NCBI RefSeq assembly: GCF_030684315.1
Contig: NC_081356.1
Coordinates: forward strand, 132,854,933-132,918,932
Origin: Stegostoma tigrinum
Lineage: Eukaryota
Length of the DNA: 64,000 nt
Direction: 5' to 3'
The notes beneath the pieces are model-generated. The model was not told the DNA's origin, searched no databases, and saw only the letters and a program-made list of their open reading frames with translations. This document shows positions 12,966 to 48,853 of the stretch, piece after piece; positions within the stretch are counted from its first letter, which is position 1; every line of letters starts with the position of its first letter. The position numbers were made by a program, and so were the translations under genes.

Positions 12966-13349
12966 CAGCTTCTGCTAATGGGTGGTCAATGACAATTGCG
13001 GATTATGTGACGGCTGAGGAAGGAGGCGCCGCTGTTTTGCCCTGCAGTTTCACCCACCCAGACACTAATCTCACACTCACCGGCTCTGTGATATGGATGA
13101 AACATTCCAAAGGTGTTATCTTTAACTGTACATACCCTGGCACAGGCCATTCAAAGGGTGAGCTGTGTGAGAATGTGATACAGCAGGACGGTGGGAACAG
13201 ATTCAGATTTGTGGGGAACCTCAGCAACAATGATGCCTCAATATTAGTAGACGGACTGGGCCAGGAGGATAACGGTTCCCATCGGTGTCGTGTTGAACTC
13301 AACCTTGACAGATTTGGAACTAGGAAAGGAACAAAACTGGAAGTGACAG
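12966..13349 (+). CDS. Siglec-15-like receptor, exon encoding N-terminal V-set Ig domain (V1)
   Basis: (CT)n polypyrimidine tract then CACAG| acceptor; donor ACAG|GTAAGG at 13349/13350; phase 1-1. Translates ASANGWSMTIADYVTAEEGGAAVLPCSFTHP...VIW...IFNC...ELCE...RFRFVGNLSNNDASI...EDNGSHRCRVEL...GTKLEVT, which matches Siglec-15 V-set motifs (WSM..V.AE.G.AAVLPC.FTHP; extra C...ELC pair; CRVE). Confidence 0.9.
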
Positions 13350-14068
13350 GTAAGGAACAATGTCCGGATGGTGTCATTGCCCTGATAGCTCAATGGGAAC
13401 AGGCTCCACCTGGTCCGGGAGATCTCAGATCAGATCCTTGTCCTGGGTTCTTTCAATTGGTCAGATGCAGGAGGCAGTGAGAAGGAGAGAGAAAGAGATG
13501 AGGCTGGGATTTATCGACCATTCAGTCACCATCTCTGAGACCTCACACAGTCACTCACACAATCACTCATTGGCTGTGTTCAAACTCAGTGTTCTGGTAT
13601 AGGGAACAGTGAAAACATCACTACGGACCTGAGTTCCAAGGTCCCCGCCAATGAGAGTTCTGGGTGAGGAAAAAATAGGCCTGGTAATTCCCTTGTCTGA
13701 TGATAATATGGGGACATGAGAACAAAAAGGGCAATTCAGCCCTTCTCAGCAGTTCTGTCATTCAATGAAATCTTCACAGATCTATCTAAGTACATAAAGT
13801 GTCCTTCACCCAAATCTCTTAGCACCATTTTTTTCTAAATCAAAGCTGCAATAATCTCAGTTTTAATCCATTGATATAGCCCCAGTTGCCATTCATGGAA
13901 AAATAGCTCCAAACGTCTGCCACCCAATGCACATATGTGTTGTTGAGCTTCACCCCTGAAATGTCTAGCTCCAATTTTAATGGATACCACTAGTCCTTTA
14001 TTTTCACTTGTTCGCAGGATGTGGACATCATATCCAGACAGCCAGATTTCCCTCAATCCCATAACTCC

Positions 14069-14735
14069 TTACTTTCTGAATGACCTTACTTTCTGAATGT
14101 AACATTTGACTGCTCTGTTCAACAGTCTGCAAACATCAGGGAAGAAGCTGTTCTTGAATCTGTTCACATCTGTACTCAAATATTTACACCTTCTGCCCAA
14201 TGGAAGAGGTTGGAGGAGAGTATTACCAAAGTGGGAGGGGTCCTTGGTTATCAGAGATAATGGGAACTGCAGATGCTGGAGAATCCAAGATAGCAAAGTT
14301 TGGAGCTGGATGAACACAGCAGGCCAAGCAGCATCTCAGGAGCACAAAAGCTGACGTTTCAGGCCTAGACCCTTCATCTCTCTAGAAGGGTCTAGGCCCG
14401 AAACGTCAGCTTTTGTGCTCCTGAGATGCTGCTTGGCCTGCTGTGTTCATCCAGCTCCAAACTTTGCTATCTGGGGTCCTTGGTTATGTTGGCTGTTCCA
14501 TGGGTAGTGGGAATTATAGATGGAGTCATTGGATGGAAGGCTGGTTTGTGTGATGGTCTGGGCTGTTCTCACAACTCTCTTGGGGTCTTGGGAGGAGCAG
14601 TTGCCATACCACACTTTCTCAGATGCTTTCTTTGGTGTGTCTATAAAGATTGGTCAGAGTATTTGTGGAAATGCCAAATTTTCTTAGCCTTCTGAGGAAG
14701 TAGAGTCATTATATTCCTTTCTTGAACAGTCGCAT
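14069..14735 (-). mobile_element. Inverted copy of the 3' end of the same Rex1/Babar LINE
   Basis: Reverse complement of ~16860-17291, including the terminal (TTCAGAAAGTAAG)2. Confidence 0.75.
14252..14472. mobile_element. Short palindromic Penelope-derived element
   Basis: Inverted pLTR arms; 15-bp direct repeat GGGGTCCTTGGTTAT at 14237-14251 and 14473-14487. Confidence 0.85.
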
Positions 14736-15639
14736 TGAAAAGAATGCACCAGAGCAAATAAACAGGCACTCTCACGCCCATGAAAAAGTTTGAGCTAGAT
14801 CACCAACGTCATGGAAATAAAGATGATGTCCCAAGACATTGCTTAACTGCCATCCATCAGCATTGGAAATGTGACACCACAGGATCTTTCTAGCTTCACA
14901 GTTCTATGTTTCACAAGCAACAGCAATGTATCACTCGATGCTGAAATCGTTGTGTGCAGCACAATAGTTACAGATCTTGTAGAGATGTTGCGGATATGTT
15001 ACAACAACGACCAGTCTGAGAAAGCCACACTACAAATTACCAGGCCTCAAAGTATTCTTCTATAGTGGGAAGAATGGGACAACAGTTGCTTGGTGGGACA
15101 AAACACTGAACTGTTTCCCCTTTCACTATCTCAGATGTATCCTCAGCATCTCTTGGAAGGACAAGATCACAAACTCAGAGGTTTTGGAGAGTGCTAATTT
15201 GAGCAGCATACAGTCATTGCTAAGTCAATGATTTCCTACACTGGTTCAGCAATGTTCATCTCATGGTGCATAGTATAAACTCAAGACCTCTGAGTGGCAA
15301 ACCGACCATTGTGCACCACCTTCTTGATGCCAATAACTCCATGACTCAAGGACCTGCAAGTGAGATATGAAGCTGTTGGACATTATTCATGATAAATGGG
15401 AGGCAGTCACTGAGGCAGTGGCCTCGAGAGATTGACTGGCTCAAGGGTAATTGGAAGGGACGAGTGGAAGTGGAAAAATAGACTGGCTAATATCTAGGCC
15501 TTGAGACTGTCTTCCTCAAACAAAGTTGAACGACAGAGCTGACGATCACAATTAAGCCTTTATCTCACAACATTTAAGGTTTTCAAGGAAATGTCACTGG
15601 CTTTGGGCAGACATTAAATGTTGAGACTGAACCGATGGA

Positions 15640-17291
15640 AAGCCCCATTGGAGTCCCAGCTATGCATTCAGATCCTGTGCAGAACAGCTGGCAGGAATAT
15701 TTGTTGAAATTTTAAACCTTTCCTTACTTCGAACTGAAGTCCCCACCTGCTTCAAGAAGACTGCGATCATCTCAGTGCCAAATAAAAATCATGCAGCGTG
15801 CCTCAATGACTACAGCCTGGCGGCCTTGACTTTCACAATTATGGAGTGGTTCGAGAGGTTAGTCATGGCTCATGTCAACTCCAACTTCCCAGATTGCCTT
15901 GATGCTTTGTAATTTGCCTACTGGCACAACACATCCACTGAAGATGACATCTCATAGAATTATGAAACCCCTACAATGGAGAAGCAGGCCATTCGGCCCA
16001 TTGAGTCCACCTGACCCCTTGAAGAGTATCCCACCCAGACCCATCCACCCTGTAATCCTGAATTTCCCTCGGCTAACTCCCAGCCCGCACGCCTTTGGAC
16101 ATCATGGGCAATTTAACATGGCCACCCCACCTAATCTGCACATCTTTGGACTGTGGGAGGACACTGGAGCACCTGGAGGAAACCCATGCAGTCACAGAGA
16201 GAATGTGCAAATTCCATGCAGACAGATAGTCACCCAAGGCTTGAATGGAACCCAGGTCCCTTGGTGCTGTCAGGCAGCAGTGTGAACAACTGAGCCACTG
16301 TGCTGCCTCGGCCCAAGGATACAGATGCCAGGATCCTATTTATTGACTATAGCTACACCTTCAACATCATAATTCCAAACAAACTCATCTCCAAACTCTG
16401 AGATATAGGTCTTGGCTCCCCGTTCTACAGCTGGAGCCTTGACTCCCTGACCCATAGACTGCCATCAGTAAAACTAGTTGACAAATCTCCTTCACCAAAA
16501 TCCTCTACACCAGTGTCCCGCAAGGCCCCTACTGTACTCCTTATACAATCATGACTGTGTGACCAAATTCTGCCCAGCTCCATTTACAAGTTTGCTGATG
16601 ACACCAACATTGTAGGTCAGATCTCAAAACAACGACGAGACAGAATACAGGAAAGAGATTTAGTGCTTAGCAGCATGGTGTAAACACAACAATTTCCCCA
16701 TTAATATCAGCAAAACGAAATGGCTGTTCATTGAATTTAGGAAGCGGAGTGATGGGCACGTCCCAGACTGTGTCAATAGTGCTGAGGCGGAGATGGTGGC
16801 GAATATCAAGCACATGGGAGTGATAATCATCAACGATCTGCCCTGGTGTTCTCTTGTTGGTGTGACTGTTCAAGAAAGGACAATAATGTCTCTACTTCTT
16901 CAGATAGCTAAGGAAATTTGGCATTTCCACAAATACTCTGACCAATTTTTATCGACACACAAAAGAAAACATCCAAGAAAGTGTGGTATGGCAACTGCAC
17001 TTCCCAAGACCCCAAGAGAGTTGTGAGAACAGCCCAGACCATGACACAAACCAGCCTTCCATCTAATGACTCTATCTAAAAATCCCACTACCTACAGAAG
17101 CAACCAACATAACCAAAGACCCCTCCCACTTTGATAATACTCTCCTCCATCCTCTTCCATTGGGCAGAAGGTGTCAATGTTTGAGTACAGATGTGAACAG
17201 ATTCAAGAACAGCTTCTTCCCTGCTGTTCGCAGACTGTTGAACGGAGCTATCAAATGTTACATTCAGAAAGTAAGGTCATTCAGAAAGTAA
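15640..17291 (+). mobile_element. Rex1/Babar-type LINE, degenerate, interrupted by a SINE at ~15955-16310
   Basis: Same RT motifs as 480-2390 (GTCCCCACCTGCTTCAAGAAGAC, AAGTTTGCTGATGACACC); 3' end with repeated TTCAGAAAGTAAG. Confidence 0.75.
15955..16310 (-). mobile_element. HE1-like SINE
   Basis: Same head and V-domain, reverse strand, inserted in the Rex LINE. Confidence 0.75.
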
Positions 17292-18370
17292 GTTGGCTTG
17301 GGGTTGAGGGAAATCTGGCTGTCTGTTTTCAGCATTGGTTGTCCAATAGAAGACAGAGTGTGGTAGTAGACGGAAAGTATTCAGCCTGGAGCTCTGTGAC
17401 CAGTGATGTTCTGCAGGGATCTGTTCTGGGACTTCTGGTCTTTGTGATTTTTATAAATAACTTGGATGAGGATGTGGAAGGGTGGGTTAGGAAGTCTGCC
17501 AATGACACAAATGTTGGTGGAATTGTGGACAGTGTGGAGGGCTGTTGCAGGTTGCAATGGGACATTGACAGGATGCAGACCTGGGCAGAGAAGTTGCAGA
17601 CGGAATTCAATCCAGGAAAGTGTGAATTGATTCATTTTGGAAGGTGAAATTTGAATGCAGAATACAGGGGCAATGGCAGGATTCTCGGCAGTGTGGAGAA
17701 ACAGAGGTATCTTGGGGTCTACGTCCATAGATCCCTCAAAGTTGCTACCCAAGTTGATAGGGTTGTAAATAAGGCATATGGTGTGCTGGCTTTCATTGGC
17801 AGAGGAATTGATTTTAAGAACTGTGAGGTTATGCTGCAGCTCTATAAAACTCTGGTTAGACAACACTTGGAATATTGTGTTCAGTTCTGGTCACCTCATT
17901 GTAGGAAAGATGTGGAAGCTTTAGAGAGGGTGCAGAGGAGATTTAATGGAATGCTGCCTGGATTGGAGGGCAGGTCTTATGAGGAAAGGTTGAGGGAGTT
18001 AGGACTTTTCTCATTGGAGCGAAAAAGGATGACAGGTGACTTGATAGAGTTGTATAAGATGATGAGGCATCGATAGAGTGGATAGTCAGAGACTTTTTCC
18101 CAGGGTGGAGATGACTATTACAAGATGGTATAATTTTAAGTTGATTGGAGGAAGGTTTTGGGGAGATATTAGAGGGATGTTCTTTACACAGAGAGTGGTG
18201 GGCATGTGGAATGCGCTGCCAGCAGTGGTAGCGGAGTCAGATACTTTAGAGACTTTGAAGCGACTCTTGGATAGGCACATAGAGGATGGTAAAATGTAGG
18301 GTATACAGGGTAGATTGGCCTTAGTATGGTAATAGGTCTGCACAACATTGTGGGCTGAAGGGCCTGTATT
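17292..18370 (+). mobile_element. CR1-type LINE RT and 3' region
   Basis: ORFs with VTSDVLQGSVLG, LEYCVQFWSP, LERVQRRF, FFTQRVV. Confidence 0.85.
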
Positions 18371-18592
18371 GTTTTTTTTATTCGTTGACAGGATGAGGAC
18401 GTCACCAAATAGCCAGCATTTATTGCTCCTCTCTAATTGCCCAGCAGGCAGTTCACAGTCAACCACATTGCTGTGTGTCTGAAGTCACATGTAGGCCAGA
18501 CCAGGTAAGGATGGCAGTATCCTTCCAAAAGGACATTAATGAACCAGAGGGATTTTTTCCGACAATCAGCAATGGCTTCATGATCATCATTA

Positions 18593-19071
18593 GAGGGTGC
18601 AAAGGAGGTTTACCAGGATGCTGCATGGACTGGAGGGCTTGTCTTACGAGGAGAGGTTGACTGAGCTCGGACTTTCCTCTCTGGAAAGAAGGAGGAAGAG
18701 AGGTGACCTGATCGAGGTGTACAAGGTAATGAGAGGCATGGATAGAGTTGATAGCCAGAGACTTTTCCGCAGGGCAGGATTGACTGCCACGAGGGGTCAT
18801 AGTTTTAAGGTGTTAGGAGGAACGTATAGAGGAGACGTCAGAGGGAGGTTCTTCACCCAGAGAGTTGTGAGCGCATGGGATACTTTGCCAGTGGTAGTCA
18901 TGGAAGCAGAGTCTTTAGTGACATTTAAGCGACTGCTGGACATGCACATGGACAGCAGTGAATTGAGGGGAATGTAGGTTAGGTTATTTTAATTTTGGAC
19001 TAAAATTAATCCACGGCACAACATCGTGGGCCGAAGGCCCTGTACTGTGCTGTACTTTTCTATGTTCTATG
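18593..19071 (+). mobile_element. CR1-type LINE 3' fragment
   Basis: ORF QRRFTRML..LEGLSYEERL...FFTQRVV; (TTCTATG)n tail. Confidence 0.85.
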
Positions 19072-19075
19072 TATT

Positions 19076-21208: not shown

Positions 21209-21559
21209 CTTCTCAGGAAGAAGTTTCAGTGGTGAGTGGGACAGAGGGAGAGTCAGTCACTTTACCCTGCATCTTCAAGACCAAGCGCAATTACCCCCTG
21301 ACTGCTGTTGCCTGGATGAGGAAGGAGCCCTACCAACACATCATTACATTTACAGCCCAATCACAGGGAAATTGGACAACTGGAAACGGTGGAAATCAAT
21401 ATGAACTCATCGGGAGCCCAGAGGAGGGAAATGCCTCGACCAGGATAAATCAGCTGAGTGTGAGGGACAATCACACTTTCCTGTGTCTGGTGGAATACAG
21501 TTCAAAACCCGATTCTCAGTATCTGATCCAGAAAGAGACACGGCTGCTGGTCATGCCTG
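21209..21559 (+). CDS. Siglec-15-like receptor, exon encoding second V-set Ig domain (V2)
   Basis: Acceptor CCCTTTCCTCAG|, donor CCTG|GTAAGA, phase 1-1. Translates ASQEEVSVVSGTEGESVTLPCIF...AWMRKEPY...LIGSPEEGNAS.RI..L...D...FLCLVEY...ETRLLVMP with canonical B-strand Cys, C-strand Trp and F-strand Cys. Confidence 0.88.
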
Positions 21560-21724
21560 GTAAGAAGCTGCTCATATATTCTTCAGTCTGTAGACAGTGT
21601 ATAGTGAGGGTGTAACTAATTCTCTGAACCTTTAATGATTACATTTTCTAGTGAAAATAATTGAACTAAAATATTCACCCTGTTTCCCTCCACAGGGGTT
21701 ATTTGGCCTGTTGAGTATCTGAAG

Positions 21725-23390
21725 TCACCAAACCACCTCTTATTTACATGTGGAAAATCCTTGACATTGATCCAGCTCCCTCAGAGCAAACAGAACCTTT
21801 GACACTCCTGTTTACGTCTGCCAGCTAGAGCTCCCTGATTGAACCAGAATAACAGCCCCAATCAGGGAATCCACACTCTGTGAAGTGCAGCTGGCTCACC
21901 TCATTACAATCACTGCATCCCTCCCACTTTGTGTCCAAGGACACAGGTTGATCCTTTCTCTTTGAGAACCGGCTGGGGTATATTAGCACTGGGTCAGGTT
22001 CCTCAGACTCAGCGCCCCATATGAGCAGTGTGTTACACACGGCAGCTCACCTCTTGTACCAGGACTGCTTTGATCAAATTTCATTCCTTATTCTGGTGAC
22101 AAAGGCATCATGCATCTATACCTGTTGTGTCCATCTCTGATTCAGAGGGCTCGTCAATGCTTGATGGAGAGGATAAACACATGGGTTCTGGCAGCCTTTC
22201 CTACTTTTCCAAAGGGCTGGCACATTTTTTCCCACACTGTTTGCAAATTTGCGGTTTCATACAGTCCAAGGACTGTCACACCTCCCTGAATTTTATACAT
22301 CACTGGACTTCACCTTGACCATACCACCTACCCATGCAGGTCATTTTCATGATTCATGCATCAAACTTGTACCCCTGTATCAAACTGTCTCTCTCACTTG
22401 ATAGAGTCTTGTGTCAGCCACTCTCATTCTTGATACCATTTCACTCTCAACCCCCAGGTCCACGAAGATCCTGGCATTGAGTCCTCTCCCCATTAACAAC
22501 TCAACTGGTGCTACACCTGTAGCTGGATGCAGTTTGTTCTTATAATCAAATAGGAACCATGACAGCATGGTCTCTAGCAAGCCTGTTTCTTCAAGCCAGC
22601 CTTCAAAATTTAGACAGTTCTTTCTTCCAGGCTATTGGAAGATGGGTGATCTGGACCTGTCCTTAAATGTCGAGTCCTGTTCATCTTTAGGAAATACCCA
22701 AACTCCCCATTGGCATTGTTTCTGCAACTTCCAGGACTCTGTTTGTTGAAAAAGAGTGTGCTATTTTTCTATCATTGTCTCTGTTTTTGACAAGTGGACT
22801 CTATGCAGGTCCGACAACTTTGGGTGGGCATCTACAATGACAAAACACATTGAGCCCATGAAAGGAATAGCATAGTCAACATGCAACCGACCTACCTGTC
22901 CATTCCCATGAATGTAGGGGAACTGCTGACAATAATTTTTGTCCTTGCTGGAACTTTGAACACTGCCTCATCAACACAGTCATGTCAGCATCCAAGCCGG
23001 GCCACCAGACATAGCTTTTTGCCAACATCTTTATTTTGGAGATTCCTCAATGCCCTAGTAAAGTTCAGCCAGTGTTCCGCAGCAGCGTTTGCTTGGGACA
23101 ATCACTCTTGCTCCCCATAACAATATACTTTCCTCTACTGTCAGCCTGCGTCTCTGGGTGCAAAAATGTTTCAGTTCTAGTTGTGATGGTCCATTGGTTT
23201 CTCCCATTACCACCAGTTGTTTCAGATTTGAAAGGACTGAACCCTTCTATGTCCAAAGTCTGATATTGTCAGCTGTGAATGGGAGTTTGTCCAGAAAATT
23301 TAATACCATTACAGACTCTTCCATTATGGATACTACTGGTATTGTGTCTGCTAATGTATCCACATTCACTTCATGGCTTTCCACCAAAGA
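21725..23390 (-). mobile_element. Gypsy-type LTR retrotransposon relic: 3' LTR 21725-21917, PPT, degenerate integrase/pol
   Basis: Minus strand PPT GGGAGGG then TGCAGTGAT LTR start; integrase remnants FLFDYK..HPATGVAPVELLMGR and HVDYA..FMGSMCFVIVDAH. Confidence 0.75.
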
Positions 23391-23980
23391 GTGAGCAGGT
23401 TGGCAAGCAAAGATGTCATGCTGCAACTGTACAAAATGCTAGTACAGCCTCATTTGGAATATTGCATGCAGTTCTGGTTGCCCCATTACAGGAAGGATGT
23501 GGAAGCATTAGAAAAGGTGCAGAGAAGATTTACCAGGATGTTGCCTGGTCTGGAGCTCAGGCCCTATGAAGAAAGGCTGAGGGGCTTGGGTCTGTTCTCA
23601 TTGGTGACAAGGAGGCTAAGAGGGGATTTAATAGAGACGTACAAGATGATCAGATGATTAGATAGGGTGGACAGTGAGAGTCTTTTTCTGAGGATAATGG
23701 CTTCAGCTTGTACAAGGGGGCGTAGCTACAAATTGAGGGGTGTTAGATTTAAGACAGATGTCAGAGGCAGGTTCTTTACTCAGAGAGTGGTAAGGGCGCG
23801 GAACGCCCTGCCTGCCAATGTAGTTAACTCAGCCACATTAGGGGCATTTAAACAGTCCTTGGATAAGCATATGGATAATGATGGGATAGTGTAGGGGGAG
23901 GAGCTTAGATTAGTTCACAGGTCGGCACAACATCGAGGGCTGAAGGGCCTGTTCTGTGCTGAATTGTTCTATGCTCTATA
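23375..23980 (+). mobile_element. CR1-type LINE 3' fragment
   Basis: ORFs HLEYCMQFW.PHYRKDV, FFTQRVV; CR1 tail. Confidence 0.85.
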
Positions 23981-24884
23981 ATCTGTTTAAAAATGTAATT
24001 TTGGCATTCACCTAAAATTCGAGTGTTATGCAGAATTCCCATCTCTTGATATAAATCACAGCTAGATAGAATACAGTAGATCCAAAAATTGTTTAGAACT
24101 TGGAAGGTCTATCTAACAGGAAATATCAAAGATGCAAGTGTTCTCACTTTGAGAACAGAGAAGACTGAAAGTTGACCTGATACACAATTTATGGTTTAAT
24201 AGAGTAGACAAAGAACGACCAAAACTAGGAACCATAAATAGAGGAGACACTAAGAAACCCAATGGAGAAACATTTTTATCCAAAGACTGGTTTGAATGCA
24301 GATACTGCTGCTGTCTGGGGTGCTGGAGATAAATGCAAGCATAGAGAAATTCCGGCACAAAAGAGGCCATTCAGCCCATTGACTTAGGAAGCAGGCAGGA
24401 TTCAGACAAATGGCGGACTTTTATTCAAGCAAAAGCTGGTTAATGCCAAAGGATCTTCCCGGAATATGACCTCGACGTGACAACACAATTATTCCCTTAA
24501 TCATTGACTCAGGCCAGAAGAGAGATCAATGTCACACCCTGATTTTTACAGTGAAACACAACATTTTTATACATTTTGTGTTACAATACTCACATACAAT
24601 GTGGTCAATGCGTCCTTCTTCCTGGTTCCATACACCCAATCCTGTGAAACACCTAATCAATGATGCGCATTCCTACTGATGGCCTCAGGTTCCCATGATC
24701 TCATGGTGTTTAACAGACATTGTTAATCTCCAAGTCTTGGGATCTTTCTACACAACTTGCTAATTAGCATTTCAAAGTTACTGGTTATAATCCTTCCGGT
24801 TTGTCTCAGACTTCCTTATCTCTAAGGACTGCTTGAATTCTGTTATTCATTGTTTTCCATGTGCTACATTTATCAAATTCAGTT

Positions 24885-25213
24885 AGAATAGATAGGGTGG
24901 ACAGTGAGAGCCTTTTTCCTCAGATGGAGATGGCTAGCACGAGGGGACATAGCTTTAAATTGCGGGGTGATAGATATAGGACAGATGTCAGGGAGTAGGT
25001 TCTTTACTCGGAGAGTAGTAAGGGCGTGAAATGCCCTGCCTGCAACAGTAGTAGACTAGCCAAGTTTAAGGGCATTTAAATGGTCATTGGATAAACATAT
25101 GGATGATAATGGAATAGTGTAGGTTAGATGGGCTTCAGTTTGGTTTCACAGGTCGGCGCAACATTGAGAGCTGAAGCGTCTGTACTGTGCTGTAGCGTTC
25201 AATGTTCTATGTT
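24885..25213 (+). mobile_element. CR1-type LINE 3' fragment
   Basis: 3' CR1 sequence with GTTCTATG tail; TTCAGTTA repeated at both ends. Confidence 0.75.
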
Positions 25214-25994
25214 CAGTTATTCCTCTTGTATTTTCCATTGTCCCAATCATGTACCTAAAAAATACAAAAGACAATTGGTTTTTGACTAGATGCTATAAGA
25301 TTTATAGTATTAATTTCCACTGTGGAGTTAGTTGCAAAGTGTGAAGTTATATGACTACTTCTACAGTTATCACCTTGTAATTAAGTTGTGACCATTCTAT
25401 TTCATTCAGGGTGTACTGAGTATCATTTTTACAGAGAAGAGAATGCATTTCCTGAGGCGATTTAACTTTGTGTTTAAGTATTTCCCCCTAATGTTTCTAT
25501 CATACTTTTGTTTATACGTGTATCTATCCTAATGTTAAAACCTATCCCTCTGATTATCTGAAGAATCTTTAACTAGAGCCTACATTGTGGGTAACTTCAA
25601 AGAAGCAATGAATTACTACAAAATAATTTTACCTGTTGTTTCTAGCTGCATAGGGGGTTAGTCTGACTGGTTCATGGGTTCAGATTTACACCCCTTGTTC
25701 TAACTGGTGCTATTCACTTAATGGGACAACATCCTTTCATTAATGAGGCTGGAAGCAATCTCTTGTCTATCCTTAGGCATCCTCTTAACAAACTGTCTGG
25801 AGGGTTGTTTGTCGGGCCCCATGATAACCTTGGAGTAGTCCCGTTCAAAGTACCATTATGTTCCACTTAATTGTTAGAGCAGAGCTCTCCCATTTTGTTT
25901 TCATCCTTGTCGAACATTTTGTGTCTTTCAAACGTGGGCCACTGTTACAAACCCTGACAAGATTCTTGTAAATCTCATCGAAATTAAAGGGCAC

Positions 25995-27200
25995 ATAATT
26001 CTTTGAGAAGGTGACCAAACAGGTAGATGAGAGTAAACCGGTTGATGTGGTATATATGGATTTTAGCAAGGTGTTCGATAAGGTTCCCCACAATAGACTG
26101 TTGTACAAAATCCGGAGGAATGGAATTGTGGGAGATATAGCAGTTTGGATCGGAAATTGGCTTGCTGAAAGAAGACAGAGGGTGGTAGTTGATGGGAAAT
26201 GTTCATCCTGGAGACCAGTTACTAGTGGTGTACCGCAAGGGTCGGTGTTGGGCCCACTGCTGTTTGTCATTTTTATAAATGACCTGGATGAGAGCGTAGA
26301 AGGATGGGTTAGTAAATTTGCAGACAACACTAAGGTCGGTGGAGTTGTGGATAGTGACGAAGGATGCTATAGGTTGCAGAGAGACATAGATAAGCTGCAG
26401 AGCTGGGCTGAGTGGTGGCAAATGGAGTTTAATGCGGACAAGTGTGAGGTGATGCACTTTGGTAGGAGTAACCAGAAGGCAATGGTAAGATTCTTAGCAG
26501 TGTAGATGAGCAGAGAGATCTTGGTGTCCATGTACACAGATCCTTGAAAGTTGCCACCCAGGTTGACAGGGCTGTTAAGAAGGCATACAATGTTTTAGCT
26601 TTTATTAATAGAGGGATCGAGTTCCGGAACCGAGAGGTTATGGTGAAGCTGTACAAAACTCTGGTGCGGCTGCACTTGGAGTATTGCGTACAGTTCTGGT
26701 CACCGCATTATAAGAAGGATGTGGAAGCTTTGGAAAGGGTGCAGAGGAGATTTCCTAGGATGTTGCCTGGTATGGAGGGAAGGTCTTACGAGGAAAGGCT
26801 GAGGGACTTGAGGCTGTTTTCATTAGAGAGAAGAAGGTTGAGAGGTGACTTAATTGAAACATATAAAATAATCAGAGGGTTAGATAGGGTGGATAGGGAG
26901 AGCCGTTTTCCTAGGATGGTGACGGCAAGCACGAGGGGGCATAGCTTTAAATTGAGGGGTGAAAGATATAGGACAGATGTCAGAGGTAGTTTCTTTACTC
27001 AGAGAGTAGTAAGGAAATGGAATGCTTTGCCTGCAACGGTAGTAGATTCGCCAACTTTAGATACATTTAAGTCGTCATTGGACAAGCACATGGACGTACA
27101 TGGAATAGTGTAGGTTAGATGGGCTTGAGATCGGTACGACAGGTCGGCACAACATCGAGGGCCGAAGGGCCTGTACTGTGCTGTAATGTTCTATGTTCTA
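25995..27200 (+). mobile_element. Young CR1-type LINE, 5'-truncated RT
   Basis: ORFs 26011-26505 ([34 protein letters not shown]) and 26544-27113; (GTTCTAT)n tail. Confidence 0.9.
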
Positions 27201-27499
27201 TAATTGCACAAAGATGGGTGGCAGATCTGAAAATGGGATATAATGTGAAGAATAGCAATGAAAAAGAAGAATACCCTGTGGCTGTTTAGTAACATTCATT
27301 ACCCTGGCACCACCAAGACAGTGTGTTGTTCTGGAGTCTTACTGACAGCCTCAGAAGCTCCTGTCTAAATCCTGGCAATGAAATTCAATATCACTTTTGC
27401 TCCTTCATTCTTCCTCCTATCTGTCTCGCTCCTGTACAACTTAACCAGCTGAGGAGCCACCAACCTGTGCCTTGTTGCACTCTCCAGATGAAGATAAAA

Positions 27500-28325
27500 A
27501 TTAGGAAGAGGAGTGGGCCCCTTGGCCCTTCGATCCTGCTCCTTCGTTCAATATGATCGTGGCCAATCATCCAACTCAGTACTTTTTCCCTATGTTCTCC
27601 CCATATTTGATACCTTTAGCCCTAAGAACTATATCTAACACTTTCTTGAAAATATTCAATGTTTGCCCTCAACCACTTTCTATGGCAGAGAATTCTTCAG
27701 GCTTATCAATTTGTGGATGAAGAAATTTCCCCTCATTTCAGCCCTAAATGGCTAACCCATACCATTAGAATGTGACTTGGAGACAGTAAGGGCTGCAGGT
27801 GCTGGAAACTAGAGTCAATAAATGTGGAGCTGAAAAGCACAGCTGATTAGACAGCATCCGAGGAGCAAGAAAGTCAATGTTTCAGGCTGTAAGTTCTGAC
27901 GAGGGGTTTCGGCCCAAAACAATGACTTTCCTGCACCTCAGATACTGCCTGACCTGCTGTGCTTTTCCAGTTCCACTTTTATTGACTCAATCTGTTAGAA
28001 TATGACCCCTGTTTCTCGACTCCCTAGTCATTGGGAGCATCCTTCCTGCATTTATCCCTTTTACTCCTGTTAGAATTTTATAGATTTCAACGAAATATCC
28101 TTTATTTTTCGAAATCCTAGTGAATATAGTCCAAATCGATCCAGTCTGTCTACATATTCAGTCCTGCAATCCCAGGAATCAGTCTGGTAAACTTTCATTG
28201 CACTCCTTCCAATGCCAGAATATCCTCCCTCGAGTAAGAAGACTAAAACTGCACACAATTCTCCAGGTGTGGTCTCACTAAGTCCATGTACAATTGCTGC
28301 ATGACTTCCCTGCTCCTGTACTTAA
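27500..28325 (-). mobile_element. Older CR1-type LINE 3' fragment
   Basis: Reverse-strand CR1 ORF2 C-terminal remnants, interrupted by a fold-back element. Confidence 0.65.
27777..27994. mobile_element. Older palindromic Penelope-derived element
   Basis: Inverted arms; direct repeat TTAGAAT[G/A]TGAC at 27765-27776 and 27995-28006. Confidence 0.65.
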
Positions 28326-28572
28326 AGGACCCTGTACTCAGAGGATCTATTACCCTGACTGATATCCAATGCAGAGAGTTGATTATTTCAGTTGGTTGAG
28401 AGATGAAACCTGCTCAGGACCAATATTACTCTGAATTCTCTTTGTTACAGATGCCTTTTATTCCAGTGCACAGGAGTGCCACTTTCTGGGACAATCTAGA
28501 GAATGTCTAGAGGATAAATACATCCTGGGTTTGAGATATTACTGACCAACATTGTTTTTTTTCATTTTATAG

Positions 28573-28683
28573 TGAGGAGGATTGAGTCCATTAACAAAAA
28601 TCAGCTGGTCATCCCACTGCTCAGCGTCCTGCTCATCTTCTTCATCCTCATCATTGTACTCATTATTTTCAGGAAGAAAGGAG
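28573..28683 (+). CDS. Transmembrane exon of the Ig receptor
   Basis: Acceptor TTTTTTTTCATTTTATAG|, donor GGAG|GTAGGT, 111 nt, phase 1-1. Encodes VRRIESINKNQLVIPLLSVLLIFFILIIVLIIFRKKG: about 22 hydrophobic residues then an RKK stop-transfer, no charged residue in the helix. Absent from the ORF track. Confidence 0.85.
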
Positions 28684-34929: not shown

Positions 34930-34969
34930 GGTATTCACAGAAAATAGAGCAGACTACATCTTTGAAAAG
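34930..34969 (+). CDS. Cytoplasmic micro-exon 1 (GYSQKIEQTTSLKR)
   Basis: Acceptor TTTTTATTTCTTTAG|, donor AAAG|GTAGAG. 40 nt, phase 1 to 2, exactly bridging the TM exon (phase 1) and the next exon (phase 2). Confidence 0.68.
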
Positions 34970-36248: not shown

Positions 36249-36925
36249 AATATTGTTTTCCAAATGCCATCTGCTTGTAAATTTCAAGCTTCAGATTCAT
36301 TTGAGATCTCCTATCTCCAAATTAACCTGGAATTCACCCTCAGGTAAAACAGAAGTTGTTGCACATTTTTAAACCTCCAAGTTGCAATAAATGCTTTATG
36401 GAGAGAAAGATTTTTGGTATATGGTCATGATTTACCACTTGCAGTGAGTGTTGAAGATTTCTAAGCCCTCTAACGTCTTCCAAAATTACAGCAGATGAGA
36501 AGCCCCTGCAAGGATTTTGCTCTCATCTCCAATCACCTCCCTCCTTGGTCTGTAAATTGTTGCTTAAAGCTGAGCCAGAGCTTCCTGGAATCTTCAGTCA
36601 CTGTGATTCCTGAGAGTTTCTGCAGGCCTCCCTGTGTTACAGCTGCTGACTACACCGTGGGTTCCATGGGTGCCAGCCACATTCTGGTGCCGAGGGAAGA
36701 CTGTTTCTCGTGACGGCATATTCAAGGATAACAGTTCTGATTGCATTTAAATCCGAACATCTGTGATTTCTAACAAGGTTCAATGGATGAACTGTGTTTA
36801 TCACCTTTTGGAATCTGGTTTCTGTGTAACTAGACCAAGAGGTGCAGACAGAATGCTCTTTACTGTGACCTAGGAGAATGCAATTAATTTCCTCAAAACA
36901 TTCATGTTCCATGTGTGTTTTTCAG

Positions 36926-36987
36926 GAATGACCCAGGTTTGTCCAGCATTCCCAGGACTGATGAGGCCCAACAGCCGCCTGCTCCAG
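36926..36987 (+). CDS. Cytoplasmic micro-exon 2 (NDPGLSSIPRTDEAQQPPAP)
   Basis: Acceptor GTGTGTTTTTCAG|, donor CCAG|GTACTG. 62 nt, phase 2 to 1, open frame with Pro/Ser-rich linker composition. Confidence 0.68.
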
Positions 36988-39900: not shown

Positions 39901-40535
39901 GTCAGCCACCTCAAATTACTGGCTATAGCTGGTTCGGATAGTGTATGGGAAGGTCTGCAGTGTTAAACAAAGCACATCTATGTGCTATCATATACTGTTC
40001 TTGTAAAATGTGGATTTCCCAACAGTTACCACAAATGAATAAAAGGAAATCAGTGACCATTAGGAAATTTTGGATGTCATGAGGTCACGAAAGATACAAG
40101 TTCTTTCCTTCCTTATGATGTAAAAATGCAAAAAAAAATTGTGCACAAGGTCCCACAAACAGCAATGCATTCATTCAGTTAACCTGTGTGTTTTAGTGAT
40201 GTACGCTGAGGGATGTGTGTTGGTGAGGACACAATGATCTGGGTTGAGGGATGAGTGACAAAGACACAAATAGAGGGCTCCTCTGTTCCCCTTTGAAGTA
40301 ATACATGTGGAATTTTTCACATCTACCTGAGAAGGCAGGCTACAGTTACCTTTAACATCTCCAATGGTCCTGCTCCAAGGTCTCAGCTTATATTTAATGT
40401 TATAGCACTTGGAATGGAATTTGAACCCACAGCCTTTTAACTCAGTGTAGTATGAGGTGCCCACTAAGCCATTGCTGATATCTAAGGAAGAATCTGCTGA
40501 TGAATGTCCCCTTATCATTCCTGTTTGTGTTACAG

Positions 40536-40583
40536 ATCAGGACGGTTCTAGCTTCTATGTTGAGATTGACAACAACAGAACAG
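40536..40583 (+). CDS. Cytoplasmic micro-exon 3 with ITIM SFYVEI (DQDGSSFYVEIDNNRT)
   Basis: Acceptor CTGTTTGTGTTACAG|, donor ACAG|GTAAAT. 48 nt, phase 1-1; S-x-Y-x-x-I fits the ITIM consensus. Confidence 0.72.
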
Positions 40584-40741: not shown

Positions 40742-41258
40742 ATATAGAAACAAAGAAACCTACAGCACAGGAACAGGCCCTTTGGCCTCCAAGCCTGCGC
40801 CGATCAAGATCCTCTGTCTAACCTGTCATCTATTTTCTAACGGTCTGTGTCCATTTGCTCCCTGCCCATCCATGTATCTATCCAAATATATCTTAAAAGA
40901 TGCTAACGTGTCTGCGTCTACCACCTCCGCTGGCAACGCGTTCCAGGCGCCCACCACCCTCTGTGTAAAGAACTTTCCACGCATATCTCCCTTAAACTTT
41001 CCTCCTCTCACTTTGAACTCATGACCCCTGGTAATTGAGTCCCCCACTCTGGGAAAAAGCTTTTTGCTATCCACCCTGTCTATACCCCTCATGATTTTGT
41101 AGACCTCAATCAGGTCCCCCTTCAATCTCTGTCTTTCTAATGAAAATAATCCTAATCTATTCAACCTCTCTTTATAGCTAGCACCCTCCATACCAGGCAA
41201 CATCCTGGTGAACCTCCTCTGCACCCTTTCCAAAGCATCCACATCCTTTTGGTAATGA
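40742..41258 (-). mobile_element. CR1-type LINE 3' fragment
   Basis: ORF 40826-41242 DALERVQRRFTRMLPG...FFTQRVVGAWNALP. Confidence 0.88.
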
Positions 41259-43112: not shown

Positions 43113-44295
43113 CATAGAACATAGAACATAGAACAGTACAGCACAGAACAGGCCCTTCAGCCCACAATGTTGTGCCGACCATTGATCCTCATGTATGCAC
43201 CCTCAAATTTCTGTGACCATATGCACGTCCAGCAGTTTCTTAAATGTCCCCAATGACCTTGCTTCCACAACTGCTGCTGGCAACACATTCCATGCTCTCA
43301 CAACTCTCTGTGTAAAGAACCCCCCTCTGACATCCCCTCTATACCTTCCTCCAACCAGCTTAAAACTATGACCCCTCGTGTTAGCCATTTCTGCCCTGGG
43401 AAATAGTCTCTGGCTATCAACTCTATCTATGCCTCTCATTATCTTGTATACCTCAATTAGGTTCCCTCTCCTCCTCCTTTTCTCCAATGAAAAAAGTCCG
43501 AGGTCAGTCAACCTCTCTTCATAAGGTAAGCCCTCCAGTCCAGGCAGCATACTGGTAAACCTCCTCTGAACCCTCTCCAAAGCATCCACATCTTTCCTAT
43601 AATAGGGCGACCAGAACTGGACGCAGTATTCCAAGTGTGGTCTAACCAAAGTTTTATAGAGCTGCAACAAGATCTCACGACTCTTAAACTCAATCCCCCT
43701 GCTCATGAAAGCCAAAACACCATATGCTTTCTTAACAACCCTGTCCACTTGGGTGGCCATTTTAAGGGATCTATGTATCTGCACACCAAGATCCCTCTGT
43801 TCCTCCACACTGCCAAGAATCCTATCCTTAATCTTGTACTCAGCTTTCAAATTCAACCTTTCAAAATGCATCACCTCCATTTATCCAGGTTGAACTCCAT
43901 CTGCCACCTCTCAGCTCATCTCTGCATCCTGTCAATGTCCCGCTGCAGCCTACAACAGCCCTCTATACTGTCAACGACACCTCCAACCTCCATGTTGTCT
44001 GCCAGCTTGCTGACCCATCCTTCAATCCCCTCATCCAAATCATTAATAAAAATTACAAACAGTGGAGGCCCAAGGACAGAGCCCTGTGGAACACCACTCA
44101 CCACTGACTTCCAGGCAGAATATTTTCCTTCTACTACCACTCGCTGTCTTCTGTTGGCCAGCCAATTCTGTATCCAGACAGCTAAGTTCCCCTGTATCCC
44201 ATTCCTCCTGACCTTCTGAATGAGCCTACCATGGGGAACCTTCTCAAATGCTTTGCTGAAGTCCATATACACCACATCCACAGCTCGACCCTCAT
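43113..44295 (-). mobile_element. CR1-type LINE, 5'-truncated RT
   Basis: ORFs 43916-44500 ([28 protein letters not shown]) and 43203-43880; (CATAGAA)n tail at 43113. Confidence 0.9.
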
Positions 44296-45472
44296 AATAG
44301 ATGGAATAAAAATGAGATGGAGCCCAGAGACACAGAACGAAGATTAGATGGTCAAAAATCTGGACCATAGTATACCATTGGAAAAAGAAACACTGATAAC
44401 GAGGACAAAAAGTCAGTGAAAATGGTTTGGCTATGCTGAAAACACGCCATATCATGACAGGGATACCAAGGTGTAGAGCTGGATGAACACAGCAGGCCAA
44501 GTAGCATCAGAGGAGCCGGAAGGCTGACATTTCAGGCCAAGACCCTTCTTCAGAAATGGGGGAGGGGAAGGGCATTCTGAAATAGATAGCTAGACAGGGG
44601 GAGGTGGATAGAAGGTGGAACAGATAAGTGGAGAAGAGATAGACAGGTCAAAGAGGCGGGGATGGAGCCAGTAAAGGGTTTGTGACCTGGACCATGGGAC
44701 TGTGAGAAAATTGGAAACCCTGCTCCCTTCATAACTTCACGCTTCTCAATTGGTAATCATCGAATCAGGAATTCCTGCATCACTTTAAAAGGACATCTGA
44801 ATCATCCCACTTTGGTGAATGCAGAAAAATCAATTATGATCTTCTTATCCTGAGAACTTCAATCAAATCACCCCCAAACCTTCCAGTCCAAAGATATACA
44901 AACCTAATTTGTGACAGAACTACTTGTAATTGAACTGTGTGAGACCAGATATCTTGATTCCGCACCACATTCTTTCTCAGCTCAAACTATACCACCCAAA
45001 ATGTGGTGCCCAGAACTGCTCGCAAGTTGAAAAAGGCATAAATTAATTATTCTCCCCAGATTCAAATTTCTCCACAGCAGTGGGTCTGTCTCTCTAATAT
45101 ACTCATACACATACAATCCATTGAGACTCCATCTTGCCTCCAATTCTAGTTCCTCCATATCCCTTACAGTAAATATAAACTCACCATAATCCCAGAGGGT
45201 ACAACGCTGATCTCTCATTTGAGAGAGCGGACTGGTAGGTGGTTTAAATTGACTATAATAAGAAAAGCACCGGTGCCAATGTTTTCAAACTCCAAGATTC
45301 TAAGAATCCCATATAAAACTCTTCAACTCTCTTTCCCCCTTCTAAGTCGCTCCTTAAGACATGCCTACTGGAGAACCACCTGTCCAAATAACTCCAAATA
45401 CAGTTAGATGTCTGATTCTTATGGAGATCATAGAATATTTTCCAATGGTCAAGCTGTAATGTAAATACAGGA

Positions 45473-47475
45473 GATAATGGGAACAGCAGATGCTGGAAAA
45501 TCCAAGATAATAAAATGTGAGGCTGGATGAACACAGCAGCCCAAGCAGCATCTCAGGAGCACAAAAGCTGACGTTTTGGGCCTAGACCCTTCATCAGAGA
45601 GGGGGATGGGGTGAGAGTTCTGGAATAAATAGGGAGAGAGGGGGAGGCGGACCGAAGATGGAGAGAAAAGAAGATAGGTGGAGAGAGTATAGGTGGGGAG
45701 GTAGGGAGGGGATAGGTCAGTCCAGGGAAGACGGACAGGTCAAGGAGGTGGGATGAGGTTGGTAGGTAGGAGATGGGGGTGCGGCTTGGGGTGGGAGGAA
45801 GGGATGGGTGAGAGGAAGAACAGGTTAGGGAGGCAGAGACAGGTTGGACTGGTTTTGGGATGCAGTGGGTGGAGGGGACGAACTGGGCTGGTTTAGGGAT
45901 GCGGTGGGGGAAGGGGAGATTTTGAAGCTGGTGAAGTCCACATTGATACCATTTGGCTGCAGGGTTCCCAAGCGGAATATGAGTTGCTGTTCCTGCAACC
46001 TTCGGGTGGCATCATTGTGGCACTGCAGGAGGCCCATGATGGACATGTCATCTAAAGAATGGGAGAGGGAGTGGAAATGGTTTGCAACTGGGAGATGCAG
46101 TTGTTTATTGCGAACCGAGCGGAGGTGTTCTGCAAAGCGGTCCCCAAGCCTCCGCTTGGTTTCTCCAATGTAGAGGAAGCCACACCGGGTACAGTGGATG
46201 CAGTATACCACATTGGCAGATGTGCAGGTGAACCTCTGCTTAATGTGGAATGTCATCTTGGGGCCTGGGATAGGGGTGAGGGAGGAGGTGTGGGGGCAAG
46301 TGTAGCATTTCCTGCAGTTGCAGGGGAAGGTGCTGGGAGTGGTGGGGTTGGAGGGCAGTGTGGAGCGAACAAGGGAGTCACGGAGAGAGTGGTCTCTCCA
46401 GAAAGCAGACAGGGGAGGGGATGGAAAAATGTCTTGGGTGGTGGGGTAGGATTGTAGATGGCGGAAGTGTCGGAGGATGATGCGTTGTATCCAGAGGTTG
46501 GTGGGGTGGTGTGTGAGAACGAGGGGGATCCTCTTGGGCCGGTTGTGGCGGGGGCGGGGTGTGAGGGATGTGTTGCGGGAAATACGGGAGACGCGGTCAC
46601 CACACCCGGCACCTTCCCCTGCAACCGTAGGAAGTGCTACACTTGTCCCCACACCTCCTCCCTCACCCCCATCCCAGGCCCCAAGATGACATTCCACATT
46701 AAGCAGAGGTTCACCTGCACATCTGCCAATGTGGTATACTGCATCCACTGTACCCGGTGTGGCTTCCTCTACATTGGGGAAACCAAGCGGAGGCTTGGGG
46801 ACCGCTTTGCAGAACACCTCCGCTCGGTTCGCGACAAACAACTGCACCTCCCAGTCGCAAACCATTTCCACTCCCCCTCCCATTCTTTAGATGACATGTC
46901 CATCATGGGCCTCCTCTAGTGCCACAATGACGCCACCCGAAGGTTGCAGGAACAGCAACTCATATTCCGCTTGGGAACCCTGCAGCCTAATGGTATCAAT
47001 GTGAACTTCACCAGCTTCAAAATCTCCCCTTCCCCCACCGCATCCCTAAGCCAGACCAGTTCGTCCCATCCCCTCACTGCACCACACAACCAGCCCAGCT
47101 CTTCCCCTCCACCCACTGCATCCCAAAACCAGTCCAACCTGTCTCTGCCTCCCTAACCTGTTCTTCCTCTCACCCATCCCTTCCTCCCACCCCAAGCCGC
47201 ACCCCCATCTCCTACCTACCAACTTCATCCCACCTCCTTGACCTGTCCGTCTTCCCTGGACTGACCTATCCCCTCCCTACCTCCCCACCTACACTCTCTC
47301 CACCTACCTTCTTTACTCTCCATCTTCGGTGCGCCTCCCCCTCTCTCCCTATTTATTCCAGAACCCTCTCCCCATCCCCCTCTCTGATGAAGGGTCTAGG
47401 CCCGAAACGTCAGCTTTTGTGCTCCTGAGATGCTGCTTGGCCTGCTGTGTTCATCCAGCCTCACATTTTTTTATC
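45473..47475. mobile_element. Fold-back Penelope-like element (family A): minus arm 45473-~46596, plus arm ~46598-47475
   Basis: GIY-YIG coding sequence on both strands (ORFs 45825-46883 minus and 46458-46919 plus); 14-bp direct repeat ATGTAAATACAGGA at 45459-45472 and 47476-47489. Confidence 0.9.
47382..47413 (+). ncRNA. Hammerhead ribozyme-like motif in family A pLTR (similar copies at 10914-10945 +, 58882-58913 +, ~54678-54709 -)
   Basis: CU-CUGAUGA-A-GGGUC-UA-GGCCC-GAAAC-GUC^AG: conserved core and stem II, but only 2 bp of stem I evident. Confidence 0.6.
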
Positions 47476-47577
47476 ATGTAAATACAGGATTCTGTTTTAC
47501 TGTAAGATTCTTTGATTCTAGAGTCAGAAAGCTGATGAGGTAATGCAGTTTTAGAGTGGATACTGTTTGTATTACAG

Positions 47578-47631
47578 CTCAGCCTGATCCGTGTACCTAT
47601 GCCAACATCGTGTTTGACAGTAACAAAAAAG
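47578..47631 (+). CDS. Cytoplasmic micro-exon 4 with ITIM-like CTYANI (AQPDPCTYANIVFDSNKK)
   Basis: Acceptor CTGTTTGTATTACAG|, donor AAAG|GTAACC. 54 nt, phase 1-1. Confidence 0.75.
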
Positions 47632-47720
47632 GTAACCTTCTACAATTTTTTTTTCTATATAGTGATGTTTCTAAACATTTAAAATACATCCCTTTCACTA
47701 AAAAGATTGTTCTCTTTCAG

Positions 47721-47762
47721 CTCAAGATGGCAAGATTCTCTCAGTTACTGATTCAGAAGAGA
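47721..47762 (+). CDS. Cytoplasmic micro-exon 5 (AQDGKILSVTDSEE)
   Basis: Acceptor TTGTTCTCTTTCAG|, donor GAGA|GTGAGT. 42 nt, phase 1-1, acidic run preceding the terminal ITIM. Confidence 0.7.
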
Positions 47763-48263
47763 GTGAGTCAGTTTTTTCCTTTCAAAATCCTAATCCTCTC
47801 CCATTCCACTGAAGCCAATTCTCCCATGTGAGAGACAGTGCCAGTTGGGGCTGGGTGATCTATTTCCTTGTTATCAGAGTCCCTGACTCTGGGTGGCTGG
47901 ATCATGGAATTTTGATCACATGACCTCCAAGCCTGTTTCCCTCACCACAATGCTGTTGGTCAATCTGTCCATCTTCATTTAGGCGTAGCTTTTCTGCACC
48001 AATCGGAAAGCAAACAAATTCTGCACTATCCCATTGAATGATATTTGACTGTCAGTCAAAAAAGCTTGTCTCCCACAATGTGTTTGTAAAGGTCATAAAG
48101 AGAATGAGGGGCAAAATGTACAACTGTTGGAGTAATATTTCCCTTTCCAGTAATTACCTTGATACTGAGGAGCTGATGTTGGGGTAAATGTTCCCCATTT
48201 TCTATAATGACCCACAAACTGAAATTATAACCATAATCAGCACTAACTTCTGTCTCTTTCAAG

Positions 48264-48301
48264 CAGACGTAACCTATGCAGCCATTGTGAACACATGTTA
48301 G
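48264..48301 (+). CDS. Terminal coding exon with ITIM VTYAAI (TDVTYAAIVNTC*)
   Basis: Branch-point-like CACTAAC at 48241, pyrimidine tract, AAG|CAG acceptor, phase 1; TAG stop at 48299-48301; V-x-Y-x-x-I is a canonical ITIM. Confidence 0.78.
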
Positions 48302-48847: not shown

Positions 48848-48853
48848 AATAAA
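48848..48853 (+). promoter_or_regulatory. Candidate polyadenylation signal for the receptor gene
   Basis: First AATAAA I found downstream of the stop codon at 48301; lies inside an LTR-like repeat. Confidence 0.3.

Follow-up and report, generated by a model that had tools for sequence, protein, structure and literature searches.

LOC125449501 of the shark Stegostoma tigrinum: a probable inhibitory member of an elasmobranch receptor family of Siglec-15 descent

We analyzed a 64,000-nt stretch of the Stegostoma tigrinum genome (assembly GCF_030684315.1, contig NC_081356.1, positions 132,854,933 to 132,918,932; hereafter the window), in which the nine exons of the gene LOC125449501 span 12966-48301 on the plus strand. 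The gene probably encodes a type I receptor composed of a leader, two V-set domains (V1 and V2), an uncharged transmembrane (TM) segment and a tail with immunoreceptor tyrosine-based inhibitory motifs (ITIMs), and represents the inhibitory form in an elasmobranch multigene family of Siglec-15 descent; we assign this reading a probability of about 0.72. In a survey of fish Siglecs, only Siglec-1, CD22, MAG and Siglec-15 are reported, the last of these as one gene that couples to DAP12 and is purely activating (PMC7226832). In the whale-shark genome paper, Siglecs appear only in a list. Full-text searches returned no literature on a Siglec-15-like family of sharks and rays, the skate MDIR family not having been compared by sequence. 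The LOC125449501 gene model is already public in RefSeq, unnamed and undescribed. What is new is a Siglec-type paired receptor with an all-V ectodomain from the Siglec-15 branch, not the gene models themselves. An earlier note, made from the window's letters, had proposed such an inhibitory Siglec-15-like receptor.

Gene structure and transcription

Relatives were collected with a HMMER search of the V1 exon against 1.84 billion representatives (228 relatives) and a word-indexed search with one V1 relative (86 named proteins). The latter contained P0174, a 394-aa S. tigrinum RefSeq protein annotated as 'uncharacterized protein LOC125449501 isoform X2'. Exon-by-exon exact matching placed exons 1-9 on residues 21-394 of P0174 at 100% identity. 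All nine exons are bounded by AG acceptors and GT donors, and the coding total of 1127 nt within the window, plus 1 nt from an upstream leader exon, yields 375 residues and a stop. This bears out the earlier count of nine in-frame GT-AG exons encoding ~376 aa. The earlier exon coordinates also stand, except for the last coding exon, which starts at 48267 (the second AG) rather than 48264 and runs to 48316, where an intron in the 3' untranslated region (UTR) begins. A six-frame scan identified two Ig-like open exons on the plus strand, each preceded by a polypyrimidine tract and an AG acceptor and followed by a GTAAG donor. The exons, each coding one an exact match to P0174, are as follows.

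12966-13349, plus strand: V1 exon, 384 nt, phase 1-1, P0174 residues 20/21-147
21209-21559, plus strand: V2 exon, 351 nt, phase 1-1, residues 148-264
28573-28683, plus strand: TM exon (short stalk, LVIPLLSVLLIFFILIIVLIIF helix, RKKG stop-transfer), 111 nt, phase 1-1, residues 265-302
34930-34969, plus strand: cytoplasmic exon 4, GYSQKIEQTTSLK, 40 nt, phase 1-2, to residue 315
36926-36987, plus strand: cytoplasmic exon 5, RNDPGLSSIPRTDEAQQPPAP, 62 nt, phase 2-1, to residue 335
40536-40583, plus strand: cytoplasmic exon 6, DQDGSSFYVEIDNNRT, with SFYVEI, residues 336-351, Tyr343 at 40556-40558
47578-47631, plus strand: cytoplasmic exon 7, AQPDPCTYANIVFDSNKK, with CTYANI, to residue 369, Tyr359 at 47598-47600
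47721-47762, plus strand: cytoplasmic exon 8, AQDGKILSVTDSEE, 42 nt, phase 1-1, residues 370-383
48267-48316, plus strand: last coding exon 9, NVTYAAIVNTC and stop, to residue 394, Tyr387 at 48275-48277
48589-48856, plus strand: 3'UTR exon, GT..AG joint 48316 to 48589; its 3' end is the minimum extent in the contigs

The stop codon in exon 9 ends at 48301 and is followed by 15 nt of 3'UTR before the splice to 48589. From V1 through V2 and TM to exon 4, the introns measure 6.2-7.9 kb. No leader exon (residues 1-20) was detected in the six frames of the 64-kb window with up to 9 mismatches; it must therefore lie more than 12.9 kb upstream.

All sampled 31-mers of the V1 exon were present in four sequencing runs of one 2022 study (X6-X9). 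Contigs from these runs, aligned over 47000-51000, cover exons rather than introns and carry GT..AG joints. The exon 7 to 8 joint (47631 to 47721) and the exon 8 to 9 joint (47762 to 48267) occur in X6, X8 and X9, and the 3'UTR joint (48316 to 48589) in all four runs. One X6 contig carries 26 loose letters directly upstream of exon 7; they match the 3' end of exon 6, so the splice from exon 6 to exon 7, over a 7-kb intron, is confirmed. Transcription and splicing of the ITIM-bearing exons thus follow the prediction, and the nine-exon gene is confirmed as real and transcribed. Contig depth in these runs cannot rank expression.

Two side observations concern transcript forms. Intron 8 is read through without splicing in one X6 contig (47733-48296, 564 nt, depth 32), which points to intron retention, pre-mRNA or some genomic DNA in X6. 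RefSeq isoform X5 (P0200) maps to 36925-36987, 40530-40583, 47575-47631 and 47721-47762; this predicted isoform lacks the TM exon and exon 4, and a frameshift in the tail exons gives it an unrelated 70-aa C-terminus. It may be a soluble V1-V2 protein, a decoy form or a substrate of nonsense-mediated decay.

V1 and its sialic-acid pocket

The V1 exon matches the Pfam V-set family (E 2.3e-10), and its best match among solved structures is human Siglec-15 (7zoz, E 2e-15, with CRVE aligned), ahead of CD33 (1.6e-8), Siglec-8 (1e-5), TIM-3 (1.7e-5) and PILR-beta (5e-3). A profile of 40 family members ranks Siglec-15 first (E 6e-25), followed by pIgR (2e-16, across both V domains) and CD33 (1.8e-7). 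Identity to mammalian Siglec-15 is 34% (E 6e-24).

The Siglec-15 structure contains two disulfides (C64-C142 and C95-C104) and R143 on strand F, with W44, Y87 and Y154 among the ligand contacts (PMC10264397). V1, aligned to 7zoz, retains the equivalents of all four cysteines (C64, C95, C104 and C142). It also keeps the pocket arginine as Arg128 (R143; CRVEL vs CRVEF; codon 13289-13291), the tryptophan as Trp26 (W44; NGW vs QRW) and an aromatic residue as Phe136 (Y154; DRF vs DRY). Across the 40 family members, every sequence that includes the N-terminus has the W44 equivalent, three of the four cysteines are invariant (the C64 equivalent is Phe in 2/40), and the Y154 position is aromatic in 32/40. 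By position, C95, C104 and C240 do not vary, and C46 and C127 are almost invariant. The pocket Arg is present in 19/19 ITIM-type members and in 11/15 members with a TM lysine (H, Y, S or G in the other four), counts that come from a small sample of phylogenetically non-independent members. These comparisons support V1 as a Siglec-15-type V-set domain, as the earlier note had proposed, and since the pocket residues are kept, we infer that V1 binds a sialylated glycan.

V2 and the all-V ectodomain

The V2 exon also matches the Pfam V-set family (E 5.5e-15). Its best match among solved structures is the Siglec-15 V domain (E 1e-7; CLVEY vs CRVEF), close to TIM-2 and CD276. The position of the essential Arg is occupied by Leu241 (21487-21489), and by Leu in 35/40 family members, next to the invariant C240. 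V2 is a diverged V-set domain in which EPY and the canonical Cys pair are retained and the extra disulfide is missing.

No C2-like exon was found between V2 and the TM exon (21560-28572). Pfam recognizes two V-set stretches in P0174 but, in contrast to P0044, P0048 and P0060, nothing of C2/I-set type. The V-V ectodomain without C2 claimed earlier is thus upheld. An AlphaFold 2 model built on the family alignment shows two confident beta-sandwich domains (predicted local distance difference test, pLDDT, about 85-94), a TM helix at residues 273-299 and a disordered tail. In Foldseek searches with the whole model, the best matches were two-V proteins (JAML, a single-chain variable fragment (scFv) and CD226), with Siglec-10 also among them. 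This result bears out the tandem-V architecture and does not discriminate between families.

Transmembrane segment and tail

A hydropathy scan of the plus strand from V2 to the gene end yielded a single outstanding segment at 28605 (top score 3.5). The segment LVIPLLSVLLIFFILIIVLIIF, followed by RKKG, contains no charged residue, in agreement with the uncharged TM read earlier. The cytoplasmic tail comprises ~95 aa and is disordered in the AlphaFold 2 model. SFYVEI (Y343) and VTYAAI (Y387) are canonical [S/I/V/L]xYxx[I/V/L] ITIMs, the motif definition being taken as quoted in PMC7226832. LOC125449501 thus combines an uncharged TM with cytoplasmic ITIMs, the hallmarks of an ITIM-bearing receptor of the immunoglobulin superfamily (IgSF). 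ITIM-like strings are frequent by chance (47 in three frames of about 30 kb), so the tail motifs carry weight only through the independent confirmation of their exons.

The tail exons are conserved beyond S. tigrinum. Exon 4 is conserved in Chiloscyllium and Hemiscyllium relatives, exon 5 is matched by 28 family members in tblastn, and exon 6 is 100% identical in the paralogue P0172. Of the tail modules, the one in exon 7, CTYA[SDEN][IL], is the best conserved across the family (44 tblastn matches from sharks and rays), and it aligns with CTYADIVF of the axolotl.

An elasmobranch multigene family

Family members in sharks and rays fall into two signaling types. The first has an uncharged TM and a 90-125-aa tail with the modules [SI]xY[AV]EI, CTYA[SDEN][IL] and, at the C-terminus, V[TI]YA[AE][VI]. 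The second has a TM with IPLG[LV]K, which resembles the PLGxxxLK of tetrapod Siglec-15, and a tail of 10-50 aa. Independent models from two salamanders and over 15 elasmobranch species repeat the V1-V2-TM-tail order and the motifs of the tail. The family is multigenic: a single Hemiscyllium chromosome carries at least 10 LOC numbers, and the 139.7-Mb chromosome of Stegostoma carries three, LOC125449501, LOC132206012 and a 'Siglec-12' gene. Automatic NCBI names within it range over uncharacterized, Siglec-15, Siglec-12, Siglec-10, pIgR-like, JAML, sialoadhesin-like, CD33-like and HAVCR1-like, which marks a family without an accepted identity. The homology search with P0174 returned no Logan transcript proteins.

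Inhibitory and activating members occur as pairs in Heterodontus (P0164/P0178), S. torazame (P0165/P0180) and Leucoraja (P0014/P0222), and the paired ectodomains are sisters in a maximum-likelihood tree. This tree covers 74 domains and only 130 columns, and its deep forks are soft. Bowfin (Amia) CD33-like/Siglec-14-like and catshark Siglec-8-like domains served as outgroups, with PILR, CD300 and skate MDIR sequences left out. Siglec-15-like domains separate from the CD33-like outgroups at 100/99. The first domains (d1) of the family form a clade at 97/91 and the second domains (d2) at 100/99; the sister group of family d2 is made up of the second domains of chondrichthyan V-V-C2 proteins (97/98). 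In the d1 and d2 clades alike, the inhibitory/activating label switches 8-9 times over 22 rows, and same-species pairs are sisters (e.g. Heterodontus, 100/98 and 99/95). Grouping of ectodomains by species rather than signaling type is the signature of paired receptors whose ectodomains stay similar through recent duplication or through exchange. On this evidence, a paired-receptor system appears to hold at the family level.

Other identities were considered and rejected. A PILR identity, suggested earlier by the end of V1, is not borne out: PILR-beta reaches only E 5e-3 compared with 2e-15 for Siglec-15, PILR lies outside the top 60 of the profile search, and LOC125449501 has two V domains. 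A CD33-related Siglec is disfavored by the E-values (CD33 1.6e-8 vs Siglec-15 2e-15), the tree split (100/99) and the lack of a C2 domain. Kinship with CD300 and TIM was rejected on E-values.

Further pieces of family genes lie downstream in the window. At 54435-54497 (+), a second family gene is represented by an intact exon of leader type, with an ATG, MRSLYVCLSAALLSVSVRGY and a GTAAAT donor in phase 1. It corresponds to residues 1-20 in many members of the family, and no V1 exon follows it up to 64000. A dead partial copy of V2 is found at 60045-60182 (+), within 59907-60230. It is 57% identical to V2 residues 1-46, has an in-frame stop at the site of the first Cys, and is truncated behind ...KKPYQHIV, where repeat-like sequence sets in. 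Such a copy fits birth-and-death turnover in the cluster.

Relatives outside the family

According to Pfam, a V-V-C2 architecture is found in Callorhinchus P0023 (LOC103174418), the lungfish Protopterus 'Siglec-15' P0019, Pristis P0232 and Heptranchias P0024. The Mobula 'Siglec-15' P0035 has two V domains and groups with the V-V-C2 proteins in the tree. A TM Lys occurs in Callorhinchus P0023, Mobula P0035 and the lungfish. Siglec-15 of frogs, birds and mammals is V-C2, and the shark/ray family is V-V-TM. The V-V-C2 genes keep a membrane-proximal C2 that LOC125449501 does not have, and its V2 groups with their chondrichthyan d2. Along with the salamander proteins described below, the chondrichthyan and lungfish V-V-C2 genes are its nearest natural relatives.

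These genes bear on whether LOC125449501 could be the shark Siglec-15 orthologue with its TM Lys swapped for an ITIM tail. Human Siglec-15 is the best match among solved structures and several family members carry the NCBI name 'Siglec-15', both of which speak for it. However, the family is multigenic per species (at least 10 Hemiscyllium and three Stegostoma loci) and LOC125449501 has neither a C2 domain nor a TM Lys. In addition, separate chondrichthyan V-V-C2 genes exist, two of them with a TM Lys (P0023 and P0035), and their d1 domains form their own clade (99/97) apart from family d1. We consider orthology very improbable; judged from gene number, domain composition and tree position, LOC125449501 is most plausibly a member of a separate, Siglec-15-derived family, and not a Siglec-15 orthologue.

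The tail module extends further. Newt and axolotl models named 'Siglec-12' (P0022 and P0029) are V-V proteins whose tails are alignable with that of LOC125449501, including CTYADIVF and VTYAVV. In their V domains they group with turtle proteins carrying the NCBI name Siglec-15, and not with the shark family. Because the tail module is common to sharks, rays and salamanders, the inhibitory tail is probably older than cartilaginous fish. The cartilaginous-fish setting proposed earlier therefore holds for sharks and rays but is not exclusive to them.

In a sarcopterygian, the lungfish Protopterus annectens, this type of domain shows an extreme all-V expansion: P0001 (LOC122808572, 1128 aa) carries seven V1-type, Siglec-15-like V domains in tandem, and its TM is uncharged.

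Alternative explanations

Several observations weigh against an inhibitory, sialic-acid-binding member of a paired family. Of the eight junctions that the earlier note wanted checked, the contigs contain exon 6 to 7, 7 to 8 and 8 to 9. The other five (V1 to V2, V2 to TM, TM to exon 4, exon 4 to 5 and exon 5 to 6) rest on RefSeq and on models from many other species, in which the exons follow in identical order. Runs X6-X9 are not on record as RNA, their nature being deduced from exon-limited coverage and GT..AG joints. Of the three ITIM-type motifs read earlier, SFYVEI and VTYAAI stand as canonical, but CTYANI (Y359) has Cys at -2 and is ITIM-like and non-canonical. The Tyr87 equivalent in V1 is His, and zebrafish Siglec-15 is reported to bind the tested glycans poorly (PMC7226832). 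Lectin activity of V1 is therefore probable but not guaranteed. No TM-Lys exon was detected in the window, where a motif scan and tblastn queries from the C-terminal ends of 12 activating proteins gave only repeat-derived noise, and a second homology search with P0174 returned no Stegostoma TM-Lys protein among the database matches. The proposal that the gene is the inhibitory arm of a paired family thus holds at the family level, where ITIM and TM-Lys forms coexist, but no activating partner was found in Stegostoma.

The unobserved junctions raise the question of an annotation artefact, in which a read-through of two genes or a pseudogene with foreign tail exons would have produced the nine-exon model. 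Such an artefact could account for the four joints between V2 and exon 6 being unseen in reads, in a region full of LINE, SINE and Penelope-like debris (long and short interspersed nuclear elements and retroelement remains) that is followed downstream by a leader exon on its own and a dead copy of V2. Each exon is, however, open, in phase and flanked by AG and GT, the exon 6-7-8-9 chain occurs in contigs of three or four samples, and the same order and tail motifs recur across the elasmobranch and salamander models. We regard an artefact as extremely improbable, even more so than orthology.

A more serious alternative accepts LOC125449501 as an inhibitory IgSF receptor of the family and denies it lectin function. 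In that case the ligand of V1-V2 would be a protein or come from a pathogen, as with the V-V ectodomains of JAML or CD226, and the Arg would be a historical or structural leftover. The change at Tyr87 and the weak zebrafish binding agree with this, as do the four of 15 activating members that lack the Arg and yet are intact genes, and the Foldseek ranking, led by two-V protein binders with Siglec-10 also among them. The ranking of a two-domain model nevertheless reflects architecture, not the binding site. The Arg in all 19 sampled inhibitory members, together with Trp44 and a mostly aromatic Y154 position (32/40) across sharks and rays, points instead to selection on the pocket. We consider the non-lectin alternative unlikely, roughly a one-in-five prospect, and favor an inhibitory receptor with a sialic-acid-binding V1.

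Proposed mechanism and comparison with known receptors

In the favored reading, V1 would bind a sialylated glycan through Arg128, and V2, in which the Arg is missing, would act as a spacer or as a second, non-sialic contact surface. Judging from the motifs, ligand clustering would lead Src-family kinases to phosphorylate Tyr343, Tyr359 and Tyr387. The phosphotyrosines, given the motifs and their conservation, would recruit the tandem-SH2 phosphatases SHP-1/SHP-2 and dampen signaling through immunoreceptor tyrosine-based activation motifs (ITAMs). Sister genes with a nearly identical ectodomain, a TM Lys and a short tail would signal via a DAP12-type adaptor, completing a paired system.

LOC125449501 resembles Siglec-15 (7ZOZ, PMC10264397) in its V-set domain with four Cys, the strand-F Arg in C-R-V-E, Trp44 and the aromatic residue at Y154, and the activating sister genes of the shark family share the PLGxK TM motif. 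In contrast to Siglec-15, its second domain is V rather than C2-set, its TM is uncharged rather than bearing Lys, and a long ITIM tail replaces the short tail coupled to DAP12. It is also one of many paralogues, whereas Siglec-15 is a single conserved gene.

CD33-related pairs (Siglec-5/Siglec-14 and Siglec-11/16; PMC4042635, PMC5701461) likewise combine ITIM and charged-TM receptors with near-identical ligand-binding domains, in multigene arrays with occasional loss of the essential Arg. The shark family differs in lying on another Siglec branch (100/99), in having the canonical inter-sheet disulfide and no C2, and in being elasmobranch. PILR-alpha/beta also form an inhibitory/activating pair, with a Siglec-like V domain that uses Arg for sialylated ligands and with an ITIM tail; PILR, however, has a single V domain, and the sequence kinship is weak. 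JAML and CD226 share the tandem V-V ectodomain and provide the best Foldseek matches to the whole model, but identity is 17% without specific kinship, and they bind protein ligands and use other signaling motifs.

Implications

Dozens of shark and ray genes carry the Siglec-15-type domain, combined with an ITIM tail or with a TM lysine, compared with the four Siglecs of the current account for fish. The architecture corresponds to a pathogen-driven paired-receptor system like that of mammalian CD33-related Siglecs, built from another ancestor and with a V-V ectodomain. Such a system bears on the origin of inhibitory sensing of sialic acid as 'self', on a former inhibitory partner of Siglec-15, and on leukocyte checkpoints of cartilaginous fish.

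We tentatively suggest, at somewhat less than even odds, that elasmobranchs expanded the Siglec-15 lineage, and not the CD33-type lineage, into fast-turnover, all-V paired sialic-acid receptors. An ITIM form with a CTYAxI...VTYAxV tail might already have existed in the jawed-vertebrate ancestor, and mammalian Siglec-15 might be the sole remaining activating half of an ancient pair. The ancestral ITIM-tailed receptor is proposed because sharks, rays and salamanders have the tail module in common.

Other features of the window

Intron 6 contains inverted, partly duplicated open reading frames (ORFs) on both strands at 45825-47228, including one of 352 aa on the minus strand. They show a weak GIY-YIG match (E 9e-4, below the Pfam cut-off) and a proline-rich low-complexity end in a GC-rich spot (52%), and look like remains of a Penelope-like retroelement. 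Many LINE-type reverse-transcriptase fragments of one family, in both orientations, fill the introns at 17171-18977, 23373-23894, 26011-27113, 40826-41242 and 43203-44500. They share motifs such as LVRPHLEYCVQFWSP, and Pfam gave no match on the three fragments tried. A run of 158 N at 63104-63261 marks an assembly gap or a masked stretch. A repeat at 47000-47535 is covered by contigs of all four runs at very high depth.

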